DNA of 64,000 nucleotides from Mytilus edulis. Taxonomy: Eukaryota. The notes beneath the pieces were generated by a model. It made no database searches. It worked only from the letters and a program-made list of their open reading frames with translations, and had not been told where the DNA came from. The DNA is taken from NCBI RefSeq assembly GCF_963676685.1, contig NC_092347.1:95976001-96040000 (forward strand), given 5' to 3'. This document shows, piece by piece, positions 11,653-22,187 of the stretch. Position 1 is the first letter of the stretch; each line of letters opens with the position of its first letter. The translations under genes and the position numbers were made by a program.

Positions 11653-12267
11653 AATAAAATCAGAAAAATATCTTCTTGTCGAAATGAACATAGAATAGAA
11701 AAATACCCAGTAAATTGTAACAGTGACATATCCATTCTTATTTCAATGATGAGAATTTATAAAGATAAGAATTTGCATGTTCAGAATTTAGTGGTAACAA
11801 CAGAGCAGTTACTGTAGTTCAGAAAAGTAATTAATTGTAATTAATTGTTTAGTTCACATGTTAATGACCACTATTTGAGACATTTAGCATTCTTATATAA
11901 ATACATCCTATCAATCAGCATCTCCATTTGGTAATTAAAAGGTCAAAGGGTTTGGGGTACTAATGATTAATTTAGAATATTAGGTAATAGGCTACACAGT
12001 TATAGGGCGAACGTCAGATTTTGACTTTTGGAAATAACCAATTAACAGCTTATTGTTAAATCATTTATCCAAAAACTTGTTTATTTGTCTTCACAGCAGG
12101 AAATCTTCTGATGACCACAATATTTTAGATGACTGACCAGAAATTACTACATGTGAAAAATACCACGTGCATGCATAAATATTAATTGCACTGGTGATTT
12201 CGATCTTTCCCTTTTCTTTTCAAAATTCAGGACATGGCAGTAACAGCTTGACAATGTTACCTTCAAG

Positions 12268-12301
12268 CAAGGAATTGTATATTTAAATATACAATTCCTT
12301 G
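12268..12301. mobile_element. 34-bp perfect palindrome with 7-bp TSD (P-element-type footprint or micro-element), copy 1
   Basis: CAAGGAATTGTATATTT|AAATATACAATTCCTTG flanked by CTTCAAG at 12261-12267 and 12302-12308. Confidence 0.85.
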
Positions 12302-12372
12302 CTTCAAGCTTTCGATATTCTGGCCTTTAGCTGTTTCTCTTTTGTTTACTTTTTTTGAGTCACTGTCCAATT

Positions 12373-12540
12373 AAAAACTTTGACATTTTCGAAATCAAAG
12401 GTTTTCTACCCAAGAAATATCTTACTTAACTTCGTACTTTATTCGGCCTGTTTAACTGGTTTTTTTTTATTCGAACGAAGATTCTTTGTAGACTTAACTC
12501 GCGTCTGGCGTACACCATTTTAATCCAGGTATATTTTGTA
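12373..12540 (+). mobile_element. Highly decayed retrozyme-like monomer (hammerhead core partly deleted)
   Basis: Colinear with 13722-13915 (AAAACTTTGA.., ATTCGA.., TTTGTAGACT.A.C..GCG); retains CGCGTCTGGCGTAC downstream of the expected cleavage site. Confidence 0.5.
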
Positions 12541-12589
12541 TATCTACATATACTATTGTATTTTTGATATAAATTGGTTCTTTTGAGAG

Positions 12590-12709
12590 CAGAGGCGGAT
12601 TTTGAGGGGGCAAGGGCCGCCCCCCTTTTCTGGGGAAAATTTGGTTGATTATATAGGAAATCCCTGAAACATGACTGGAGCGGACCCCCTCTTAGGCAGT
12701 CAGTGGGCC
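12590..12709. mobile_element. Truncated copy of the CAGAGGCGGATTT MITE family
   Basis: Colinear with 34654-34780; right TIR missing. An orphan right end of the family lies at about 13125-13170. Confidence 0.75.
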
Positions 12710-13228
12710 AAAAACAAGTTTCACTGAAGAATATTTGGATCGATTTTAAAGTAAAATCAGGAAATCCTTAATATTTGAGATGTTTTATGAGACCAAACTT
12801 AGTCTCTATAAAAACACATGGATTCACATCGCATAGAAATTGAACTTTAAATTTATCATAGCTTTAAAACTTCTACCACGAGGGCAGACTGCTTTAATAA
12901 AAAGGTTGAGAAAATGTAGGCATCCATGCAGGAAACAAAATATAAAGATAAAATAAATGCATCCAGATTATAAAGAAAACTGCGTGCTTTAATTTATATT
13001 GCGATTGGTTTGTGCAATTTGCATTAGTCATCCGGTTTGTAGATACTGGGATTATAAAGGGTTATAAAAAAATATAAAAAATATGTACATTCTCAAGTAA
13101 ATTACAAATAAATGAAATAGTCTCCCCCCCCCCCCTCCCCCCTTTGTGAAAAGTTCTGGATCCGCCCCTGTCATCCAACATTGCTTTCTATATATATTGA
13201 CTTGTGCAAGAAGTTTAATATTGGTGTT

Positions 13229-13318
13229 TGGCGAGGGAAGAACAAAAAATTTGCGAAAGCAAATTTACAGATCTAACATTGTTGGGTTGGTGTTTAGACG
13301 AGTTGTATATATATATAT
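13229..13318 (+). mobile_element. Fragment of tRNA-derived repeat ending in (TA)n
   Basis: Reverse complement of 32329-32407 (GGCGAGGGAAGAAC..GCAAATTTACAGATCTAACATTGTTGGGTTG..TTAGACGAGTTG). Confidence 0.8.
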
Positions 13319-13721
13319 GACTAATGCAAATTGCACAAATATATATTAAGGCATACTTTACAATAAACATATTACACCAAAAAAAAAATATTGGTGTTTT
13401 AACATCATCATTATCTTTTTTCTATTCACAGTCAATTAGATCTATTTCAATTAAAAAACAAACTTTAGCTACAATCTTTTGGTGACCAGTCAGCGGGATA
13501 AGTTCACGTAATGCTTTTCATTTTTTTCTTTTTTTAAAGAAAGCAATTTCTTTGTTATTTTCTTTTTTTTTTAAATCAACGTTTTTTGTTAAACATTCAC
13601 AGAACTTATCTAACTGACAAACGTATCCATGCAATGAACAGCATCTTGAGAATAGTAAGATAAATCATTGGTGTTGTAAGTTGGGGTTTTTTTTTCAGTG
13701 CACTAATGATATTATAAATTT

Positions 13722-13915
13722 AGTTTACAAAACTTTGATTTTTTTCTAAATGGTTAGGAATATATATTTCGTGAATAGATTACCTTAGCTGTATTTTGCG
13801 AAACCTTTGGGAATTTTGGGTCCTAAATACTTTTCTACTTCTACAACCTTTTTTGATTCGAGCGTCAGTGATGAGTTTTTTGTAGACTAAACGTGCGCCA
13901 AACGTTCAAATTTTT
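13722..13915 (+). ncRNA. Decayed retrozyme-like monomer with a mutated type I hammerhead core
   Basis: GTCA-GTGATGA-GTT-TTTTGTA-GAC-TAAA-CGTGCG-CC at 13864-13899 aligns to CUGAUGA/stem II/GAAA/stem III/UH, with substitutions in catalytic residues. Confidence 0.55.
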
Positions 13916-14072
13916 TGCCTTTATTAGGATACAGTCTGAGGTTTTAAATTTCGTTGACATCTATAACGTTGTCAAAGCATCAGTTAATGAATGATATGAT
14001 AAATAAGGTTCTTCCAGAACACAAGTTAAATTAAAAAAATGTATCAATTTTCCCTACTTTTCTAATTTTTAA

Positions 14073-14246
14073 AGAGGGGGCAGGACCTTTTTCGGAACGT
14101 CGGGATCTGTGCTTTTAAGCTCGGGATTGATCCTTTCGGGACCCGGGAATTCTTTTTCTAATTTCGGGATGTTGGGATTTAAATTTGGAACCTCGGGATT
14201 TCATGTTTTTAAGCCCGGGTGTCTGGATTAGGACCCGTCCCCCTCT
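14073..14246. mobile_element. MITE with TTAA TSD and AG...CT termini (Kolobok-like)
   Basis: TTAA|AGAGGGGGCAGG ... CCCGTCCCCCTCT|TTAA; internal repeated TCGGGA motif. Confidence 0.7.
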
Positions 14247-14566
14247 TTAAGGGCTTTTTTAAAGTTAATATTTAGATTTAGTCTTCGGTTAAAGTTTCCA
14301 AATATCAATGAAATTTTATAAACAGTGACAGAGTACTGTATTGTTCGTGATCTACCATAAAATAAGACCAATTTGCTGAATGCCCCACCCCCTGATTATT
14401 AATTTTACTCCTTTGCATTAACTGTAATACCTTGGTGTATAGTATGCACCAGTATCTAATACAAAATAGGGTTAAAGAGAATGGAAATGGGGAATGTGTC
14501 AAAGCGACAACAGTCCGACCATGTTTAACACATGCATTATCAGAAACTGTAAGAAGAGAACGGTAG

Positions 14567-14972
14567 TTTTTATACGACCGCAAAAATTGAAATTTTTTGG
14601 GTCGTATATTGGTATCACGTTGGCATCAGCGTCGTCGTCGTCGTCGTCGTCCGAATACTTTTGGTTTTCGCACTATAACTTTAGTTTAAGTAAATAGAAA
14701 TGTATGAAATTTAAACACAAGGTTTATGACCATAACAGGAAGGTTTGGATTGATTTTGAAAGTTTTGGTCCCAACAGTTTAGGAATTAGGGGCCAAAAAG
14801 GGCCCAAATAAGCATTTTCTTGGTTTTCGCACTATAATTTTAGTTTAAGTAAAAAGAAATCAATGATATTTTGACACAAAGTTTATGACCACAAAAGGAA
14901 GGTTGGGATTGATTTTGGGTGTTTTGGTTCCAACTGTTTAGGATAAAGCTGCGCCCCTGCGGAGCATCTGGT
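14567..14972 (+). mobile_element. Non-autonomous Helentron-type (HINE/DINE-like) element with internal 159-bp repeats
   Basis: Starts in a T-run, short IR ATACGACC..GGTCGTAT, (GTC)n microsatellite, repeat units starting at 14661 and 14820, GC-rich hairpin-like 3' end, no TSD. Confidence 0.75.
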
Positions 14973-15237
14973 TATCAAGTGTCATCTGGTGAGATTGTAT
15001 AAGGTCCAACTTTAGGATTCCACATGGCCAAGGTGTTAATCGACTTTCAATTTTTTAACCTAATATATGGATCTGAAGTGACCCCGCATATTTTTCATTT
15101 TATTCTTTGCACAAAAAATCGATCTCAGCATGAAACCAAGCATTCCTCGTGACAAAGGTAATATATTGAGATTAAACACAAAGCCAGGCGGCATATCAGA
15201 TCTCCGATTTGTGCAACCAACAACACACCAGTAGTAT

Positions 15238-15420
15238 GAAGAAGAAGAAGAAGAAGAAGATGCTTTATTTCCATAAAATGGGCTCACAAGGAGCATAATA
15301 TAATATCATAGTAATATAATATTCTTTTACAAATATAATAAACAACACAGAGTTACAAACACAAATAAGGAACAACAGTTTTCACATATTAGTATATATA
15401 TAAAACCTTTGTCTCAGGCA
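15238..15420 (-). mobile_element. LINE 3' end remnant with (TTC)n tail
   Basis: Minus strand reads ATGCTCCTTGTGAG..AATAAAGCA(TCT)n; a similar GCTCCTTGTG motif precedes the tail at about 41570. Confidence 0.5.
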
Positions 15421-15612
15421 CACCTCTGGAAAGTAACAAAAAAGAATGCTGTGAGAAGGCTAAATATATCTAGCTGAACTGCAAAAGGCACCAAGGGACG
15501 GTGCTATATGGCATGGTGGGTGCATATTAAAATGTGTATCGGGACATTAATGATATGGTTAGATATGGTAAGAAGTTGCACATAAATGGTATGTCATCCT
15601 CGTGCCTGGTGC

Positions 15613-15646
15613 CAAGGAATTGTATATTTAAATATACAATTCCTTG
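15613..15646. mobile_element. 34-bp perfect palindrome with 7-bp TSD, copy 2
   Basis: Identical to 12268-12301; flanked by CTGGTGC at 15606-15612 and 15647-15653. Confidence 0.85.
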
Positions 15647-16944
15647 CTGGTGCAGAGGAGTCAGTACTATTTAAAGTGACACAACTGCAAGAGGCACCAA
15701 GGGACAATGCTAAGTGCACAAATTATGAAAAAGATAAAATATTACCAGTTTAATAAAAAAAAAAAAAATATCACAAACAAGAAGGTAATAGAACTTGTAC
15801 GATGTGTCCTGTACCCCACCATGCCAACCTCGTGCCTAGGGCAGACAGCCTGATTAAATATTAATCTTTTAAGTTATATTTTATCTTCATTAATTGTATG
15901 GGTGAAATATATTAATGTGTCGTGTAAATGTGAATACAATGACATACACAGTGATAGATGACAGTCTTTTGAAAAACAAACATCACTTTTAATAGTATTC
16001 TTTCTGGTTCATTTGACCAATATAATACTTCCATGATTTGACCATGAAAGTAAAATGAAAATGTAATACTTTCATTCTCTAGCTTCAATTATTTGACCAT
16101 GGAAATAATTTAATTTGCTTACTTGGTTAATGATTTCTAATTTTTTTTATACATATTTCAAATATTACACAACATAAAATTGAAAATGGAAATGGGGAAT
16201 GTGTCAAAGAGACAACAACCCGACCATAGAACAGACAACAGCAGAAGGTCACCAATCGGTCTTCAATGCATATGACATCTAAAAAATGATCAAAAGTTTT
16301 GCTTAGTTATTCCTTTTAAAAACATTAATATTCTAGTTCATACGGTCGAAATTTAGGAAATGGGGTATGCGTTAAAATATAGGGCTGTAAGCAATTACAT
16401 TCCAGCGTATGACCTTCAACGATGAGAAAAACACAATCAATATAGTCGGCTATAGAAGGCACCGGCATACATGCAAACATTTGTCAAACGAGAAAGTTAA
16501 AGGCGTAATTTATAACACAATCATTTACGAAAAACAATTGACAGACATGAACCCACAACACCCACTGACCTACAGGCTAATGACTTGGGACAAGCACTTA
16601 AACAATGAGTCGGGGTTAAAAAGTTTGTGGGTGCTCAACCGTCCTTTTAACCTGGGACAGTAGTGCAATAGCAAAGTATAAGAACAAACTTAAAAAAATC
16701 CGTTCAAATTGGCGTAACTCAAAAGATAGACACAAGGTACAAAAACAACTAACATAAAAACAAGACACAAACTGACAAAGCATTGAAATTAGAATACTCG
16801 CAGATAATGAAAGCTTGTTTTAAGTCAATTACAATATTAAATCAATTTCAATCTATGTAATATATGTTGGTGCAAAGTGATATGTTAATATCTCTGTTGT
16901 AGTGTGACACTCGTCCGTCTGTACATCCCAAAATTGTTTTCCGT

Positions 16945-20474: not shown

Positions 20475-22187
20475 ATGGCAATAACTATATGTCTTTCACG
20501 TGACTGTGATGTCTATTGTCTGGAGTTGGATGAATTTGATGGTTTACAAATAGTGGTGAAAGTTCATAACTATGACAATGTTAACAAAGAAAAAAAATCG
20601 CAAGCTGAAAAATCAATTGGTGATGTAAAGAATACAACTACGCGATCAACTCCCTCAAATACCGAAGTTGAAAAGCAGATGGAACGAAGAAAAAATCAGT
20701 TACAGCGATATTTATTTACAAATAACAGACCTGCAACACATTCGCAACCCGAAATACACGTAAATAAAAAACCGTATGCTTGTAATCTATGTGACAGGAA
20801 GTACAGCTGGAGATCTAGTTTGTTGTTTCATAAGAGAATCCACACCGGTCACAAAATACAACAATGCATTGAATGTGATAAAAAATTCCTTTCCAAAGGT
20901 CGTTTTGAAAAACATTTGAAAACACACCAAAAGGAAATAACTGATTATACATGTTGTATATGTGACAGGAAGTTTCAACAAAAAAGTTCTTTAACGTATC
21001 ATTTACGTACGCACGAAAATCTATCTTACCCATGTAGAATATGTGAAAAAGAGTATAGATATAGGGCATCGTTCAACAATCATATGCGACTTCAGCATAA
21101 ATGTATTGAAAACAAACAGTGTGTCAACAGTGTTTCTTCAGATACTACTATGATTAAAAGTACCCAATCATATAATTGTCCTATTTGTGAAAAACAGTTT
21201 TCCCATGATTCAAATTTATATGCCCACTTGAAAGTACATGATTGGTGTCAAAACGTCAAATCATCAATTAATGCTGACAACATAGTTACACTAACAGAAA
21301 CTTCTATCACAACAAGTACGACTCCACAAATGTGTTCTATCGTTCCAAACACGACACTTCCGATAACTACTGTAAACGACAACATGATACAAAGGTCTTC
21401 TAGCATTGCTAATACGACAGTCGGACTGAAAAACTTCTCCGAACACGAGACAACGCTGTGCTTACCTCTATTAGACTCTAAAATCATGTCAACAACTCTG
21501 GAAAACTTTGTCAACCACGAGATAATACATTGTTTACCTCCTGTTGACATTAAAAACATGTCAGACTCACTATCAAACTCTGGTGACTCAAATAATTCAC
21601 GAGCATCATCTAATGTCAACACACAGCCATCAGTTCCTACCAATGTAAACCAAAAACACCATTCTACACGTAATTCATCTGACTCAAACATATACTCATC
21701 GTCAACTCCTGTTGGTGGCTGTGCCGTACCACGTCGACCAAATATTAAACCGAGATCAACTTGTGTTGGTTGCAACATGACACAGCCAACTTCAGGTAAA
21801 TCCAATAAAACCGTATCCTCTTATACTGGTCGGCGTGAAGTACATTCTAAGTTGCAAGCCTACACTGATCTAATGAAATGTAGTAAAGACAAGAAGCTGT
21901 CTAGTCTTGAGAATGATCTAGACCGTCCCTATAACTGCACGACATGTTTAAGCAAGTTTATACGGAAGTACGACTTAGACAGACATACGAGGATGCATAC
22001 AGGTGATAAGCCTTATCAATGTCAAGATTGTGGAATGCAGTTTTCCGAGAACTATCGTTTAAAATCTCATCGCAAGAGGCATCAACGTTTCTATGAGTGT
22101 GAATGTCCCGTATGTGGAAAACTGTTTCTCAAACATTCGACTCTAAACACTCATATGAAAATACATAACTGGCGTGAAAGTATTTAG
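20475..22187 (+). CDS. C2H2 zinc-finger protein, 570 aa, 8 fingers in 4+1+3 arrangement with a Ser/Thr-rich spacer
   Basis: Uninterrupted ORF; eight CxxC-x12-Hxxx(x)H units, linkers HTGHK and HTGDKPY; splice-acceptor-like TTTCTATTTTACAG ending at 20399 just upstream. Confidence 0.9.
   Translation: MAITICLSRDCDVYCLELDEFDGLQIVVKVHNYDNVNKEKKSQAEKSIGDVKNTTTRSTPSNTEVEKQMERRKNQLQRYLFTNNRPATHSQPEIHVNKKPYACNLCDRKYSWRSSLLFHKRIHTGHKIQQCIECDKKFLSKGRFEKHLKTHQKEITDYTCCICDRKFQQKSSLTYHLRTHENLSYPCRICEKEYRYRASFNNHMRLQHKCIENKQCVNSVSSDTTMIKSTQSYNCPICEKQFSHDSNLYAHLKVHDWCQNVKSSINADNIVTLTETSITTSTTPQMCSIVPNTTLPITTVNDNMIQRSSSIANTTVGLKNFSEHETTLCLPLLDSKIMSTTLENFVNHEIIHCLPPVDIKNMSDSLSNSGDSNNSRASSNVNTQPSVPTNVNQKHHSTRNSSDSNIYSSSTPVGGCAVPRRPNIKPRSTCVGCNMTQPTSGKSNKTVSSYTGRREVHSKLQAYTDLMKCSKDKKLSSLENDLDRPYNCTTCLSKFIRKYDLDRHTRMHTGDKPYQCQDCGMQFSENYRLKSHRKRHQRFYECECPVCGKLFLKHSTLNTHMKIHNWRESI

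Follow-up and report, generated by a model that had tools for sequence, protein, structure and literature searches.

Two palindromes with target site duplications

The 64-kb stretch of the Mytilus edulis genome analyzed here (C4:95976001-96040000; hereafter the window) carries two short palindromes, which are probably excision scars of a P-like DNA transposon. They lie at positions 12268-12301 (site 1) and 15613-15646 (site 2). Both read CAAGGAATTGTATATTTAAATATACAATTCCTTG with 0 mismatches, and this 34-mer consists of 17 bases joined to their own reverse complement with a spacer of 0. No further copy was found in the window at up to 3 mismatches, and none appeared in 100 shuffles. Each palindrome is enclosed by its own perfect 7-bp direct repeat, a target site duplication (TSD): CTTCAAG at site 1 (12261-12267 and 12302-12308) and CTGGTGC at site 2 (15606-15612 and 15647-15653). 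The boundary of site 1 can be shifted by 1 base, as the next base, C, is also the first base of the element, and it is therefore site 2 that fixes the length of the TSD at 7 bp. Outside the TSDs, the flanks of the two sites are unrelated to each other. An earlier note on this DNA had described the identical palindromes, their separate TSDs and their unrelated contexts, and the letters at both sites bear this out. The open reading frames (ORFs) near both sites, a C2H2 zinc-finger gene and low-complexity ORFs, are unrelated. An ORF of 570 aa with multiple C2H2 zinc fingers lies at 20475-22187, 5 kb downstream of the second scar.

Scars across the genome

The 34-mer is repeated throughout the mussel genome. 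A search of the 1.37-Gb assembly found the exact 34-mer at 86 places and at 145 places when up to 2 mismatches were allowed. Seventeen of the 86 exact copies sit in a single tandem array with a period of 3633 bp, located 0.6 Mb downstream of the window; counting these as one event leaves about 70 independent exact copies. A relaxed pattern, which fixed only the 12 outermost bases of either arm and allowed 0-30 bases in the middle, matched 168 two-ended sites of any junction type. TSDs were read at 17 copies of the 34-mer, namely 15 retrieved loci and the two window sites: the TSD was a perfect 7 bp in 12, matched at 6 of 7 bases in 4 and was lacking in 1. Many variant scars are likewise bracketed by TSDs. 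It had been proposed that absence of TSDs at other genomic copies would refute a transposase origin, and such absence is not what we see. The 34-mers, the perfect TSDs at both window sites and the TSDs at copies elsewhere in the genome place this structure far beyond chance.

Some copies have been carried along by larger duplications. The tandem array (C4:96576354-96641001) comprises ~19 units of 3633 bp, each with one 34-mer scar (17 exact), and one unit is shortened. One unit, L062, carries a 28-bp version of the scar (L062:1501-1528), whereas the other units carry the canonical 34-mer; the scar is thus older than the amplification, and the centre of the palindrome mutated later. One-armed remnants of the terminal inverted repeat (TIR) are found inside larger repeated units, with eight copies within 290 kb of C3 (L049-L056; C3:15.48-15.77 Mb), and four dispersed one-armed remnants (L037, L038, L042 and L045) have identical flanks. 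These remnants were therefore copied passively with their surroundings. At L016:1501-1595, a partial scar precedes a 64-bp palindrome whose CACGG...CCGTG scar, with both tips changed, lies between inverted ~15-bp copies of another sequence; this may be a fold-back repair product. The CACGG tip was considered as a sister family and rejected, since its 9 matches in all represent a few mutated copies.

The scars are also clustered. The two in the window are 3.3 kb apart, and pairs on C11 are separated by 151 bp and 591 bp, whereas ~0.06 pairs within 3.4 kb would be expected genome-wide from about 150 independent sites. In a second family, described below, the first 50 sites include pairs 181 bp and 3 kb apart. 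This clustering fits local reinsertion and is consistent with the local hopping suggested in the earlier note.

Longer elements with the same termini

If the palindromes are scars, longer elements with the same ends should exist, and the earlier note had taken their absence as fatal to a footprint origin. They were found. The tip sequence of the family is CAAGGAATTGTA. The 17-mer followed by AAAA has about 100 strand matches genome-wide, and these form 28 plus/minus pairs, of which 20 span 2.03-2.18 kb and the rest 1.2, 1.7, 2.3, 2.3, 2.6, 3.9, 7.7 and 12.6 kb. At least 28 elements, mostly ~2.1 kb long, start and finish with the identical 21 bases CAAGGAATTGTATATTTAAAA; examples are C1:11819798-11821918, C7:50453263-50455382 and C5:23331652-23335590. 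The parent TIR reads CAAGGAATTGTATATTTAAAAGG, with AAAA continuing after base 17.

A scan of metagenome contigs with the 21-mer retrieved L076 (ERZ887851 NODE-20822), an AT-rich eukaryotic contig that comes from the same or a near species and carries 520 bp of one element end. The 520-bp stretch is 86-98% identical to one end of the paired genome elements. It also matches the opposite end of one genome copy over bases 1-46, and the TIR is therefore ~46 bp long. No useful ORF was found in the 520-bp parent end. Because of this, and because the paired elements contain no RNase H or THAP match (see below), they are most likely non-autonomous. Measured against this single reference end, the parent copies form groups at ~95-98% and 86-90% identity; about half of the 34-bp scars are exact and the others have 1-2 changes. 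This indicates that activity was prolonged and not only recent. Given the changed scars and the 86-98% identity of the parents to the reference end, the recent activity claimed earlier is borne out only in part.

Several other candidates for parent ends were rejected. A 508-bp insert with the right termini (L070/L071) proved to be an unrelated ~470-bp miniature inverted-repeat transposable element (MITE) nested in a 39-bp scar variant. This MITE family gave 3370 first-look candidates and has termini GGTGTAATACC... and GGTGTAATACCACC... with an apparent 4-bp TSD (TAAA or ATAA); its sites include L070:1012-1519 and L071 (C8:5.637 and 5.655 Mb), both nested in a scar of the CAAGG family, and L072:141-598. 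The 17-mer followed by a non-A base, by A and a non-A base, or by AA and a non-A base yielded only junction variants, one-armed remnants and copies inside other repeats. Metagenome contigs L077 and L078 diverge after the 21-mer and look like chance matches. In L076, a 636-aa reverse-transcriptase ORF (L076:334-2244) adjoins the 520-bp transposon end, and the junction region matches other places in the genome at 99-100% identity. The ERZ887851 assembly therefore contains mussel-like host DNA, in which a retroelement was inserted in, or assembled beside, the parent element.

Junction classes and the length of the stubs

TIR bases 15-20 are TTTAAA, a perfect palindrome of 6 nt whose midpoint coincides with the 17|18 junction of the 34-mer, and this confounds a reading of the 34-mer as 17+17. 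If two 20-nt tails are overlapped on TTTAAA, the product is 20+20-6 = 34 bp and is identical to the observed 34-mer. Read in this manner, the left stub of site 1 (TIR bases 1-20 of the parent, the first 17 unambiguous) would occupy 12268-12287 on the plus strand and the right stub (TIR bases 1-20) 12282-12301 on the minus strand, with TTTAAA (TIR bases 15-20) common to both at 12282-12287. At site 2, the corresponding stubs (TIR bases 1-20) would occupy 15613-15632 on the plus strand and 15627-15646 on the minus strand, sharing TTTAAA at 15627-15632.

We examined the junctions of the first 50 of the 168 two-ended sites by position, a sample not chosen by junction type. The exact 34-mer accounts for 21 of the 50, and 34-mers with 1-2 substitutions in the central ten bases for another 9. 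Four are 40-bp (20+20) scars with the centre TTTAAATTTAAA, two perfect and two with one change, and a fifth 40-bp scar is complex. One is a 38-bp (19+19) scar with the centre TTTAATTAAA. Scars with TATA microhomology are 26 bp long at two sites and 28 bp at one. A TIR-templated insertion was seen at one site (C3:61139152), and several other sites have fillers. In addition, 3 to 7 sites genome-wide carry a 35-bp form, TTTAAAATATAC, and the scars at L021/L032 and L025 are one-armed, the intact TSD copies enclosing just a single stub. The junctions are thus heterogeneous in the manner of end joining, and the heterogeneity is centred between the stubs.

The extra bases in the longer scars repeat the next TIR bases on both sides and are therefore not random filler. 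Among the sampled scars, the longest clean palindrome is 40 bp, and the retained arm is never deeper than ~20-22 nt; therefore, a tail of ~20 nt fits best. As read from the scars and not from cleaved DNA, the stub would be at least 17 nt long, with ~20 nt as the best estimate. The 17+17 arrangement is probably a coincidence, the 34-mer being two ~20-nt tails annealed over 6 nt. The earlier note had invoked the same 17-nt chemistry as in Drosophila. This part does not hold, because the TIR continues with AAAA past base 17, and the 40- and 38-bp scars and the arms of the second family point to ~20 nt. Its central claim, that the palindromes were left behind by the excision of a cut-and-paste element with unusually long TIR stubs and 7-bp TSDs, is supported by the longer elements, the TSDs and the junction classes.

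Other scar families

Two other kinds came to light when 290 kb of retrieved sequence was scanned for short palindromes bracketed by 7-bp TSDs. The second family (CTGAG; tip CTGAGACTACTATAACACAG..., start CTGAGACTACTATAA) was found at L059:652-685, with the TSD AGTTAAA, and at L068:1431-1471, with the TSD TTTAATA. Genome-wide, its 18-mer has 975 strand matches and forms 301 two-ended scars. No kb-scale plus/minus pair was found among the first 100 matches listed. Across 50 listed sites, the junctions range from 32 to 59 bp, with at most 8 of the 50 in any one class. The arms often extend to 19-20 nt (CACA or CACAG on either side) and have served as templates for fillers. So wide a spectrum fits break repair and not the copying of a tiny element, which suggests that the second family argues against a mobile micro-element. 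As this family is free of the palindrome confound, it is also an independent sign of stubs longer than 17 nt.

The third kind is a 24-bp perfect palindrome, CATGGAAGTATTAATACTTCCATG, inside the 7-bp TSD GGTAGAC (L044:639-662). Its tip, CATGGAAG, resembles the tip of the Drosophila P element, CATGATGA.

Superfamily and transposase

Several features suggest that the family belongs to the P superfamily: the 7-bp TSD, the target motif, the CA tip, the long stubs and the occurrence of P-type transposase genes at other places in the assembly. Both window sites and most of the others read have a TSD of 7 bp, within the 7-8 bp of the P superfamily. The target motif RTnnnAY is symmetric. In a small symmetrised sample (n=24), T occupies TSD position 2 and A position 6 in 77%, R occupies position 1 (Y at position 7) in 71%, and T/A occupies flank positions -2/+10 in 75%. 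The motif resembles GTANTAC, the target consensus of Galileo (PMC4168063). A review of P elements describes the long staggered cut, which leaves long stubs, as a distinguishing feature of P transposase, with 17 nt in Drosophila (PMC7776569). In the literature searched, this cut is documented for the Drosophila enzyme only; a preprint on zebrafish THAP9/Pdre2 refers to the Drosophila 17-nt cut alone, and the passages searched state no cut position for THAP9 itself.

Profile searches of the genome gave 47 matches to PF21787 (TNP-like RNase H), 18 to PF21789 and 150 to THAP. The TNP-like RNase H matches include 10 of identical score and an open frame of 798 aa. The PF12017 profile gave 0 matches in the genome and also 0 in the controls. 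One THAP match (C9:51301138-51301338) sits 3.5 kb inside an unpaired CAAGG...AAAA tip (C9:51304812). It is the only domain match near any tip, with ~0.1 such coincidences expected by chance, and its proximity could be due to chance. In the proposal of a P-like element, the TSD, the target motif, the CA tip and the long stubs agree with the idea, and the linked THAP/P-type transposase was not found.

A model of excision and repair, and its alternatives

We propose, with a probability of roughly 70%, that each 34-bp palindrome marks a donor site repaired after the excision of a non-autonomous P-like transposon of ~2.1 kb, and that the tails were ~20 nt long. An element with TIRs of ~46 bp and a 7-bp TSD would once have occupied each scar position and been excised in the germ line. 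A transposase, most likely of the P/THAP9 type and encoded elsewhere in the genome, would cut the transferred strand at the element tip and the other strand ~20 nt inside the TIR, and each flank would thus be left with a ~20-nt 3' tail of TIR beside its copy of the TSD. The last six bases of the tail, TTTAAA, are self-complementary, and two tails could anneal flush over 6 nt; filling of the 14-nt gaps and ligation would then leave 20+20-6 = 34 bp between the TSD copies. Where annealing failed or other microhomologies were used, the outcome would be the 40-bp, 38-bp, 26- and 28-bp (TATA), filler-containing and one-armed scars.

The same products may be viewed in other ways. A P-like transposase could cut exactly 17 nt inside the TIR, and the two 17-nt tails could be joined end to end with no overlap. 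The commonest product is indeed exactly 17+17, the one-armed scars at L021/L032 and L025 have exactly 17 nt between the TSDs, and 17 nt is the Drosophila value (PMC7776569). However, those one-armed cases were preselected by the search pattern, and each arm of the 40- and 38-bp palindromes is longer by precisely the following 3 or 2 bases of the TIR (4-5 and 1 of the 50 sites). Arms of the second family are commonly 19-20 nt. Moreover, blunt joining would have to dominate here, whereas it is rare in flies, with a single isolate in each of two junction tables (PMC2895639). We regard a 17-nt cut with blunt joining as quite improbable. Another superfamily might have a cleavage chemistry that likewise leaves long stubs, and in favour of this no P-type transposase or THAP domain was found by the profile searches within or beside the family. 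Yet the 7-bp TSD, RTnnnAY, the CA tip, the clustering and the long stubs jointly match only P among the described superfamilies (PMC4168063, PMC7776569), and the genome has intact P-type transposase genes, in multiple copies of identical score. A source outside the P superfamily thus appears unlikely.

We give far less credit to two further origins. The 34-mer itself might be a minimal TIR-only mobile element that is cut and pasted by transposase, as the earlier note offered as an alternative. There are about 70 independent identical copies with differing 7-bp TSDs, and a few variants are found repeatedly, such as the T13A form at two sites. However, the copies are accounted for by the longer elements that share these termini, and the 40- and 38-bp variants hold parent-TIR bases past 17 in an arrangement absent from the 34-mer. 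One-armed scars with intact TSDs exist as well, and the 301 scars of the second family vary too much for copies of a single element. In addition, if an element of 34 bp were cut ~20 nt in from both ends, it would come apart as two unpaired oligonucleotides. This alternative is unsupported, and we consider it very improbable. Equally hard to credit is an origin without transposase, in which the interior of inserted elements would be deleted through hairpin or cruciform processing or replication slippage. Inverted repeats are prone to deletion, and the L062 array unit secondarily lost 6 bp at the centre of its palindrome. Nevertheless, the TIRs are ~46 bp long and the breakpoint is fixed at more than 100 independent sites, never lying past ~20-22 nt in the sampled scars, a sharp limit that inverted-repeat slippage does not give. 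Furthermore, both the templated fillers and the junctions at microhomology agree with end joining of double-strand breaks.

Several observations weigh against our proposal of annealed ~20-nt tails from a P-like element. At TIR bases 18-20, AAA could be a chance match (~4% at this base composition), and in that case two 17-nt tails could have been joined bluntly. Three 39-bp scars with a variant 22-nt arm do not fit a strict 20-nt tail. This arm, CAAGGAATTGTACTA[GA]TAAGTA, is found at C2:93531202, C4:11892342 (L026) and C4:13929181; its tip has 29 genomic copies, 0 of which form an inverted pair with another copy of itself, and it may mark one terminus of an element whose two ends differ. The 28-bp version in L062 arose after repair inside a young tandem array, so that part of the central variation may reflect later mutation of the palindrome. 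For the paired elements, a 7-bp TSD is presumed from the flanks of the scars. Finally, no match to the PF21787, PF21789 or THAP profiles was found genome-wide inside the paired elements or beside exact tips, and the family is not tied to any transposase among these matches.

Comparison with known transposons

Other cut-and-paste transposons, including Tc1/mariner, hAT and piggyBac, are alike in that a footprint at the donor site lies between TSD copies. Tc1/mariner leaves 2-3 nt per end, hAT leaves palindromic nucleotides derived from the flanks, and piggyBac excises precisely. To our knowledge, none of these leaves 17-20 nt of each TIR.

Drosophila P is more similar. Its footprints keep stubs of both TIRs between intact TSD copies, and its insertions cluster locally. 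One study of Drosophila P excision reports junction classes like those of the mussel (PMC2895639): in its junction tables, the tails are most often joined through internal microhomology and seldom bluntly, and there are also templated insertions, other small insertions and junctions that have lost one tail. The mussel family differs in its TSD of 7 bp instead of 8, in tails that appear to be ~20 nt instead of 17, and in the dominance of one product, because its tail ends in a 6-nt palindrome. Moreover, the mussel scars are natural, germ-line events fixed in a mollusc genome; they outnumber the countable elements and have no linked transposase.

Galileo and 1360, members of the P superfamily in Drosophila, share the 7-bp TSD and a palindromic motif of the GT...AC type (PMC4168063), which corresponds to R-T-n-n-n-A-Y in the mussel. 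Galileo differs in having very long, internally repetitive TIRs and in encoding, or deriving from elements with, a P-type transposase, whereas in the mussel parent the TIRs measure ~46 bp and no transposase can be recognised. BuT5, a non-coding MITE of ~1 kb mobilised by a divergent P element (PMC3698922), is likewise a non-autonomous, non-coding partner with many copies. For BuT5 an autonomous master with matching ends was found (PMC3698922), in contrast to the mussel family, for which none was found.

Implications for the mussel genome

The mussel scars provide an in vivo record of a very long stub in a lophotrochozoan, probably of ~20 nt. They demonstrate as well that a short palindrome between TSDs can represent a scar and not an element, which bears on repeat annotation, on estimates of past activity and on the calling of micro-MITEs; the number of scars reaches 301 in one family and 168 in another. 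The junction spectra offer a view of germ-line end joining in bivalves, including the use of microhomology and templated insertions, the latter being attributed to polymerase theta in flies. A more tentative generalization, to which we give somewhat less than an even chance, is that molluscan P-type transposases have kept the long staggered cut typical of the Drosophila enzyme but place it at ~20 nt and not at 17, that scars outnumber countable elements, and that thousands of scars may exist across families. If this is true, germ-line excision followed by end joining would be frequent enough for scars to outnumber the elements that can be counted, and the genome would be a natural catalogue from which the cut position and the end-joining preferences could be read, family by family, without biochemistry.

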